Shown: piece by piece, positions 10,937-11,136 of the stretch | Layout of the letters: every line of letters begins with the position of its first letter | How positions within the stretch are numbered: position 1 is the stretch's first letter | The notes under the pieces: model-generated | The model's database searches: none | Told to the model about the DNA's origin: nothing | The model's input: the letters and a program-made list of their open reading frames with translations, nothing else | Assembly: GCA_040357565.1 (NCBI GenBank) | Contig: JBDODJ010000001.1 | DNA: 64,000 nt | Source: Cercozoa sp. M6MM | Lineage: Eukaryota > Protista > Endomyxa: Ascetosporea | Direction: 5' to 3' (one strand) | Translations under genes and position numbers: made by a program

Positions 10937-10942
10937 AAAAAA
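10937..10942 (-). terminator. Putative RNA polymerase III terminator (T6)
   Basis: TTTTTT on the minus strand 7 nt after the discriminator of the outer tRNA. Confidence 0.7.
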
Positions 10943-10949
10943 CACAGCG

Positions 10950-11136
10950 CGATCCCGACTGGACTCGAACCAGTATCCACTCGAACTGCTCACAACTGCT
11001 CTTTGATATAGTCTTCCGCTCTACCACTGAGCTACTCGCCCGAGGGCGAGGCAGGGCTCGAACCTGCGACCTGAAGATTAGGAAATGATGGAGCCCCGTA
11101 GGGCAGGCAAGCGCTCTACCATTGAGCTACAGGATC
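10950..11136 (-). tRNA. Outer tRNA body (5' half 11136-11107, 3' half 10984-10950) whose anticodon region is replaced by ~120 nt containing a permuted tRNA
   Basis: Acceptor GATCCTG/CGGGATC plus G73; D-arm GCTC-AATGGTA-GAGC; T-arm ACTGG-TTCGAGT-CCAGT; A15:U48; anticodon stem CTTG/CGAG. Anticodon ambiguous (GCA or GCC depending on junction). Confidence 0.8.
11012..11077 (-). tRNA. Circularly permuted tRNA body (3' half 11077-11043 precedes 5' half 11041-11012), nested inside the outer tRNA
   Basis: 3' half TCTTC-AGGTC-GCAGG-TTCGAGC-CCTGC-CTCGCCC-T, a 1-nt spacer, then 5' half GGGCGAG-TA-GCTC-AGTGGTA-GAGC-G-GAAGA. Perfect 7-bp acceptor and 5-bp anticodon stems; G15:C48. Anticodon undetermined. 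Confidence 0.85.

Follow-up and report, generated by a model that had tools for sequence, protein, structure and literature searches.

A circularly permuted tRNA housed in the anticodon-loop insert of a tRNA-shaped gene in a cercozoan genome

Introduction

Can the halves of two tRNAs be interleaved within a single gene, and what might a cell make of the transcript? The question is raised by a 187-nt gene on the minus strand of a 64-kb stretch of DNA (64,000 nucleotides, analysed as a whole and hereafter called the window) from Cercozoa sp. M6MM, in which a tRNA-shaped host, A, bears an anticodon-loop insert that houses a complete, circularly permuted tRNA, B. The genome (23.6 Mb, 2,235 contigs) is that of an intron-rich eukaryote, with HSP70 split by introns, and the locus sits deep within a contig of >300 kb. 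Permuted tRNA genes as such are known, and the literature describes introns within permuted tRNAs; a permuted tRNA inside the insert of another tRNA was not encountered in the reviews and papers searchable, in agreement with the original prediction, which knew of no earlier nested case. With no published precedent found, it is the nesting of the permuted tRNA that appears new, on the evidence of one locus in one genome.

Architecture of the interlocked unit

Read along the minus strand from 11136 to 10950, the unit consists of a 5′ part of A (32 nt), a 22-nt linker, the 3′ part of B (40 nt), a single C, the 5′ part of B (32 nt), a 20-nt linker and the 3′ part of A (40 nt), followed by 7 nt and T6 (Table 1). 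The order 5′A, linker, 3′B, one nucleotide, 5′B, linker, 3′A, T6, as originally predicted for the minus strand, is correct base for base, and the cross-pairing stems, Levitt pairs and canonical D and T arms claimed along with it were all recovered in place. The acceptor of A pairs GATCCTG (11136-11130) with CGGGATC (10957-10951), 7/7 positions being paired including one U-G; that of B pairs GGGCGAG (11041-11035) with CTCGCCC (11050-11044), 7/7 Watson-Crick; and the anticodon stem of B pairs GAAGA (11016-11012) with TCTTC (11077-11073), 5/5. The Levitt pairs are A15:U48 in A and G15:C48 in B, and the D and T arms are canonical in both. A and B are broken at the same position, 33/34, giving a symmetric layout (32+22+40 and 32+20+40). 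On joining in silico at 33/34, the 5′ part of A, ending CTTGCCT, meets GCAGTTCGAG at the start of its 3′ part, and the 5′ part of B, which starts GGGCGAG and closes with GGAAGACT (ending GAAGACT), meets CCTAATCTTC; the 3′ part of B ends CTCGCCCT at U73.

Default ARAGORN and Rfam at gathering thresholds returned no matches anywhere in the 64-kb window. The claim that a tandem reading of the pieces is poor against a crosswise one was borne out: read in tandem they reach only 28 and 26 bits with RF00005, below the threshold of 29, and cross-joined in silico A and B are each accepted as a tRNA by ARAGORN, B being called tRNA-Arg(CCT). With introns allowed, ARAGORN finds A as one gene across the full 187 nt. 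Throughout the 23.6-Mb genome, the pattern of a B box followed by an A box within 14-44 nt gave seven matches at six places (reversed control, 0), permuted at this locus only, the others being ordinary close tandem genes or fragments. From the base-for-base match and this genome-wide pattern search, the interlocked layout is confirmed far beyond chance, and B is the sole permuted tRNA found in the 23.6-Mb genome. Pol III features are present (A and B boxes, no internal T4, a T-run terminator), and the predicted topology stands: a permuted tRNA in the anticodon-loop insert of a tRNA-shaped gene, within one terminator-free Pol III-type unit.

Folded as a whole, the unit has an MFE structure that does not resemble a tRNA and whose stability does not exceed that of shuffles (z = -0.93). 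Constrained to a double cloverleaf, the unit folds at -59.9 kcal/mol versus -68.5 kcal/mol unconstrained, 8.6 kcal/mol above the MFE, a gap that would probably not be out of the ordinary for tRNAs.

A tandem 10-nt duplication, GAGCAGTTGT / GAGCAGTTCG (window 10980-11001, minus strand), lies directly upstream of the 3′ part of A; absent from the paralogues of A, it gives the CTGC of the A anticodon loop two alternative pairing registers.

Table 1. Coordinates of the interlocked unit in the window, its paralogues and the canonical tRNA clusters
Feature	Position	Strand	Basis or remark
Whole 187-nt unit, G1 of A to G73 of A	10950..11136	-	No internal run of >=4 T; ARAGORN with introns; model R1 132 bits
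A 5′ part: acceptor strand, D arm, G26, anticodon-stem 5′ strand CTTGC, C32-U33	11105..11136	-	18-mer TAGCTCAATGGTAGAGCG exact at six loci
Linker 1, 22 nt	11083..11104	-	Hairpin 1 plus pyrimidine-rich rest
Hairpin 1, GCCC-UACG-GGGC, UNCG-type tetraloop, directly 3′ of U33	11093..11104	-	Kept in 6/6 family members; compensatory change
Linker 1 remainder, pyrimidine-rich	11083..11092	-	Homologous to CT-rich portion of paralogue inserts
B 3′ part: C34-C35-U36-A37-A38, TCTTC, variable loop AGGTC, T arm, CTCGCCC, U73	11043..11082	-	Covered by sub-threshold YrlA-like match
Lone spacer C between U73 of B and G1 of B	11042	-	Sequence
B 5′ part: acceptor GGGCGAG, D arm, G26, anticodon-stem strand GAAGA, C32-U33	11010..11041	-	Sequence; ARAGORN on joined halves
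Linker 2, 20 nt: first copy of tandem GAGCAGTT duplication plus most of GTGAGC (10993-10988)	10990..11009	-	Sequence
A 3′ part: G34-C35-A36-G37-U38, TCGAG, variable loop TGGAT, T arm, CGGGATC, G73	10950..10989	-	Register as in RF00005 alignments of the paralogues
7-nt trailer plus T6 Pol III-type terminator	10937..10949 (T6 10942-10937)	-	Paralogues all end T4-T7 within 7 nt
Paralogues of A: L064 (C30), L065/L066 (C35), L067 (C55), L068 (C119)			C35 holds two copies in opposite orientation
Canonical tRNA clusters (L042, L055, L043, L056)	C314:8100-15000 and C53:65990-68900		C1320 (L054) is a near-duplicate of part of C53

Canonical tRNA set of the genome

The canonical tRNA set is complete, nearly non-redundant and clustered on two contigs, part of one of which is duplicated on a third (Table 1). 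The clusters comprise ~50 tRNA genes, 10-200 nt apart, for all 20 amino acids with both initiator and elongator Met; they are without Arg-CCG and Gly-CCC only, and Arg-CCU, Cys-GCA and Tyr-GUA are present. Given this complete set, neither A nor B is needed for decoding. The only intron found in the cluster tRNAs is one of 18 nt in Tyr-GUA, the sole canonical tRNA-Tyr gene, with a textbook bulge-helix-bulge.

Outside the clusters, tRNA-Val(TAC), the sole canonical isoacceptor found as dispersed copies only, occurs in several identical copies (C86, C439, C1125, C1835), C86 carrying two at a distance of 437 nt. Truncated tRNA-Leu fragments are also dispersed (L070 on C8, L072 on C133, L080 on C1409, L078 on C988), some running from a 5′ half into unrelated sequence and others having lost the anticodon arm to an internal deletion, the one on C988 adjoining a long (CA)n; tRNA pseudogene debris is thus present in the genome.

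A family of six tRNA-Tyr-like loci

The D-arm 18-mer of A, TAGCTCAATGGTAGAGCG, recurs exactly at six loci, namely C1 (A itself), C30, C35 (twice), C55 and C119, and a genome search with a covariance model (R1) built from these six returned the known loci only, with no further members. All six have a 55-115-nt insert after C32-U33 and a T-run terminator with no internal T4, the five paralogues of A carrying structured inserts of 55-82 nt after U33. From 5′ to 3′, the family design comprises a tRNA body; the anticodon-stem 5′ strand followed by CT; a 4-bp hairpin, G[YC]CC-NNCG-GG[RG]C, with the loop UACG, UUCG or CUCG; a pyrimidine-rich stretch; and a variable middle. On the 3′ side follow the block GTG[GA]G-N4-NCG[GA]G-[CT]GGAT, the T arm, the acceptor strand, the discriminator and the T-run. 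The variable middle is empty in C30, holds a GC-rich hairpin in C35, C55 and C119, and is occupied by tRNA B in C1, alone among the six in having a tRNA inside its insert. The nested layout originally predicted was found in the C1 copy only. RF00005, applied to four of the paralogues (C30, C55, C119 and C35a, of which C35b is a near-duplicate), gave 45-52 bits (cut-off 29) and put the insert in the anticodon loop.

Both-sided changes affect 4/7 acceptor pairs, 2/5 T-stem pairs and 1/4 hairpin pairs, the last being a compensatory U-A / C-G change at the second pair of hairpin 1; in the covarying stems 96-100% of cells are paired, versus 28-49% with the partners slid. The differences between the acceptor and T stems of A and those of its paralogues are fully compensated. 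The covariation proposed as a check is thus found in the acceptor, T stem and hairpin 1 of the family of A. Two metagenome pattern scans for relatives gave 0 matches. Among prokaryote genomes, a loose normal-order pattern of B gave a single match, an unrelated bacterial tRNA-Asn.

Anticodon stem and identity of the host

The anticodon-stem 5′ strand of the family has two competing 3′ partners, a proximal GTGRG and a distal NCGRG. With its next base, the proximal strand forms a 6-bp pairing with G26-C31 that is perfect in all members (100% of cells); it would make the variable region 14 nt long and unstructured and put a pyrimidine at position 37 of 4/5 distinct members. The distal strand, which is Infernal's choice, pairs with an AxC or CxU mismatch (80% of cells paired) and gives a normal 5-nt variable loop; the CU plus 5 nt preceding it make a proper 7-nt loop, with U33 and purine 37, in 5/5 distinct members. 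For A itself, the predicted anticodon stem CTTG/CGAG is present, but it has just 4 bp, one of them G-U, is flanked by a C31xU39 mismatch and has a better-paired rival in GTGAGC (10993-10988), the proximal partner, which is kept in all paralogues.

Joined in silico, four distinct members have the anticodon GUA with A73, and A has GCA with G73. The products of the paralogues are nearest canonical tRNA-Tyr (54-55/72), and one of their joined loops, CTGTAAA, is the canonical Tyr loop of this genome. The family is read as tRNA-Tyr derivatives broken at 33/34 because of these distal-pairing loops, the GUA anticodon and the Tyr-like bodies; since the first one or two bases of the insert are also those of the 3′ part, the junction could be placed anywhere up to 35/36. 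Were the cut at 37/38, position 37 would be C, and proper loops come solely from a 33/34-35/36 junction. The paralogues carry G1-C72, and eukaryotic tRNA-Tyr carries C1-G72; the GCA of A together with G73 we take to match no known identity set, Cys requiring U73. Position (not 37/38), G1-C72 and the lack of a consistent bulge-helix-bulge argue against the insert being a simple intron.

The nested module B

Module B runs through variable loop, T arm, acceptor hairpin and D arm and is closed by the 5-bp anticodon stem. All of its stem pairs (21/21) are Watson-Crick and every standard tertiary position is intact. With the nearest canonical tRNA (Lys-CUU or Cys-GCA) it is identical at only 53/72 positions (73%), and was therefore not recently copied from any gene of the assembly; with A it is identical at 44/72, the D arms matching at 17/18 and the T loops being alike. 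Full pairing despite such low identity argues that the structure of B has probably been kept by selection. Joined at 33/34, B has the loop CTCCTAA, the canonical Arg-CCU loop of this genome; its discriminator is U73, where canonical Arg tRNAs have G73, and its D loop is not of the A20 type, which all four canonical Arg tRNAs share.

The 7-bp acceptor predicted for B has 7/7 pairs, but a 7-bp stem cannot be closed by a 'loop' of only 2 nt, U73-C, so that the end is equally readable as 6 bp with a CUCG tetraloop, the hairpin 1 loop of C30 and C55. The match of Rfam YrlA (RF02553, with a T arm, a closed acceptor and a D arm) spans exactly B (window 11011-11075) and scores 45.2 bits, below the gathering threshold of 69. 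Bacterial YrlA has the same module order as B, with the remainder of the RNA attached at the anticodon-stem position, and in Mycobacterium smegmatis a YrlA whose acceptor stem has 7 bp is cleaved by RNase P and then acquires CA (PMC4201824). By analogy, the spacer C could act as an encoded C74, since an RNase P cut 5′ of G1 of B would leave ...U73-C. B differs from YrlA in belonging to a eukaryotic genome, in its sub-gathering score and in lying inside a tRNA-shaped host; a Ro-binding motif was not found, and Ro60/TROVE (PF05731) gave no match in the genome with a method that does detect the 85-position PF01974 domain.

Junctions and processing machinery

The junctions of the unit lie at 33/34, in contrast to the canonical eukaryotic 37/38. 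Strict and relaxed scans for a bulge-helix-bulge found none at the junctions of A or B, the strict scan yielding scattered chance matches only, and none consistent across the family; as a control, the textbook motif of the canonical tRNA-Tyr, GTGGA CTGT [AAT] TGGT versus ACCA GCAG [ACA] TCCAT, was recovered. In the relaxed scan, a half motif (helix, UU bulge, CTGC:GCAG) occurs in the C1 copy alone, by way of the first GAGCAGTT repeat.

A relaxed-scan motif in three paralogues was rejected, as it needs the D stem melted and the loop would be without U33. One continuous helix of the linkers is not supported as special: the duplex reaches -13.2 kcal/mol, versus -10.6 +/- 2.8 kcal/mol for shuffles, 182/1000 of which were equal or better.

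A tRNA-splicing endonuclease domain (PF01974) is encoded in the genome. RtcB was not detected in the genome by the search method that finds this small endonuclease domain, and RNA_lig_T4_1 gave no match in a genome search that missed its controls as well; a Trl1-type ligase could also circularise RNA.

Proposed mechanism and alternatives

The explanation that is preferred, and that tentatively, places the locus in one Pol III-type unit of a Tyr-derived six-member family, with permuted B occupying the cargo slot of the insert, the host body and the structure of B kept by selection, and the insert removed with B as a passenger or mimic. The insert, with its UNCG-type hairpin, pyrimidine-rich stretch and variable 'cargo' slot, would be removed as a non-canonical intron, leaving a 72-nt tRNA-shaped RNA with the anticodon GCA for A and GUA for the paralogues. 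B, leaving with the insert, would be a tRNA mimic that RNase P may open 5′ of G1, turning the spacer C into C74, and would serve as a passenger or processing handle, not a required decoder. In favour are the shared design, the covariation and the Tyr-type loops of the family, the intact structure and YrlA-like topology of B, the lack of an internal T4 and the endonuclease domain. On the host side, A with GCA and G73 and the paralogues with G1-C72 count against this explanation, as do the non-canonical splice position without a bulge-helix-bulge, the better proximal pairing and the sub-gathering YrlA score.

Of the alternatives, the one that fares best, unlikely as it is, has the unit remain unspliced as a stable 'double-headed' tRNA-like non-coding RNA, in which the host body is a scaffold, the insert is functional (for example, in binding tRNA-recognising proteins) and neither part decodes. 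The missing canonical splice signal would be expected of such an RNA, and of the helices other than the acceptor, the one conserved best pairs G26-C31 with the proximal GTGRG[YC] (100% paired), a strand inside the supposed intron; the 6-bp stem and CUCG tetraloop readable at the end of B, shared with hairpin 1 of two paralogues, its YrlA-like topology and a canonical tRNA set that is complete without these genes point the same way. The perfect Tyr-type loops (CU plus 5 nt) in all members would nevertheless be left unaccounted for, no Ro60 gene was found in the genome, and the fold of the whole unit is not above shuffles (z = -0.93).

Rather doubtful is a functionless accident, in which a tRNA broken at 33/34 and joined at its ends (for example, as an RNA-ligation product copied to DNA) was inserted in a decaying or redundant tRNA-Tyr derivative. 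The uniqueness of the locus in the genome, the mismatched identity of the host (GCA, G73), the local 10-nt tandem duplication and the scatter of tRNA fragments and pseudogenes are consistent with such an origin, and the spacer C may be seen as the start of a CCA tail. An accident sits poorly, however, with a B that keeps 21/21 stem pairs and all tertiary positions at 73% identity to the nearest tRNA, with host stems that differ from those of paralogues by compensated changes, and with an intact terminator and no internal T4.

It is improbable that the unit is a single Pol III transcript of two interlocked tRNAs which both translate, freed by four 33/34-type cuts without a bulge-helix-bulge, with endonuclease and ligase yielding linear A plus a circle, and RNase P, at the encoded C74, and tRNase Z opening a permuted or circular intermediate to an aminoacylatable, decoding B (CCU, Arg-CCU-like). 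This reading draws on the acceptance of cross-joined A and B by ARAGORN, the match of the B loop to the canonical Arg-CCU loop of the genome, the shared 33/34 break with its symmetric layout and no internal terminator, and the endonuclease domain; in C. merolae, moreover, maturation of permuted tRNAs via circles is established, and T. pendens provides a case with an intervening sequence of 1 nt (PMC3978253). The original prediction proposed that one splicing reaction could yield linear A and a circle that is itself the intermediate of B, and this is not supported as stated: cutting at the exon borders of A alone leaves a linker of ~42 nt in the anticodon loop of B, so that four cuts are needed; no junction has a bulge-helix-bulge; the linkers pair like shuffles; the breaks are at 33/34; and the tRNA set is complete. 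Against decoding by B in particular, it is the sole permuted tRNA found and Arg-CCU is already supplied, whereas the permuted genes of the known lineages fill gaps in the tRNA set; it has U73, not G73, and no A20-type D loop, and RtcB was not detected.

A misassembly in which two adjacent tRNA genes of ordinary kind had their halves shuffled, as the likeness of the D arms (17/18) and T loops of A and B might suggest, has next to no probability, because the shared words are far below assembler k-mer size, two normal genes could not give rise to the 3′B-C-5′B junction, the linkers share homology with paralogue inserts on other large contigs, and the locus is deep in its contig.

Relation to known systems

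Like B, the permuted tRNA genes of Cyanidioschyzon merolae, prasinophytes, chlorarachniophyte nucleomorphs, Auxenochlorella and Thermofilum pendens place the 3′ half ahead of the 5′ half on one strand, with very little sequence between the two (1 nt in T. pendens; PMC3978253), and have a break in the anticodon loop and a canonical cloverleaf once joined. Unlike them, B has no bulge-helix-bulge, is single in its genome, fills no gap and is without flanks of its own. In split and tri-split tRNAs (Nanoarchaeum, Caldivirga) and yeast dimeric precursors, halves likewise have to meet through acceptor-stem pairing across other sequence or more than one tRNA-shaped unit is present per transcript; here, by contrast with split tRNAs, all four halves are interlocked in one 187-nt unit, not at separate loci, and there are no leader/trailer bulge-helix-bulge helices.

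Eukaryotic tRNA-Tyr genes carry introns as a rule, and the canonical Tyr gene here also has one. The host family resembles intron-bearing nuclear tRNA-Tyr in its GUA anticodon, A73, D and T arms and Pol III terminators. It differs from nuclear tRNA-Tyr and from red-algal atypical introns in its 55-115-nt insert at 33/34-35/36, not 37/38, in the absence of a bulge-helix-bulge, and in having G1-C72, a UNCG-type hairpin after U33 and two rival 3′ partners. Scored as intron-type tRNAs by covariance, the four paralogues covered reach 45-52 bits (cut-off 29); the A locus gives the 28- and 26-bit tandem matches and is spanned by ARAGORN with introns and by R1 (132 bits).

Implications

Were both tRNAs produced, B would be the first permuted tRNA in the intron of another tRNA, and the first to be the only permuted tRNA of its genome. 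If the unit is expressed and processed, the halves of two tRNA genes can interleave and still be sorted by the cell, a eukaryote handles 33/34 junctions without a bulge-helix-bulge, and the insert excised from a tRNA can be a tRNA or tRNA mimic in its own right. Under the same condition, the locus would be a natural counterpart of the 'tRNA scaffold' of RNA engineering and a test case for the origin of permuted and split tRNA genes by RNA-level ligation of halves. Even with B a mere passenger, the six-member family, Tyr-like with structured inserts of 55-115 nt, would constitute an undescribed kind of Pol III gene.

Further features of the family loci

Several smaller observations concern the surroundings of the paralogues. 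The two C35 copies lie within a 725-nt duplication that is 92% identical, and C30 and C55 share ~560 nt of downstream flank at 73% identity. On C119, at a distance of ~1.2 kb from the tRNA-like gene, a tract that is AT-rich and (TG/TA)n-like (L068 2690-3005) has sub-threshold matches to mir-297/mir-466, and a microRNA there was rejected as a low-complexity artefact. Downstream of the C55 gene (L067), the acceptor-strand end and trailer, GGCACCGCG followed by T-rich sequence, occur four times, every ~35-45 nt, in repeats that resemble stuttered copies of the 3′ end and terminator of the gene.
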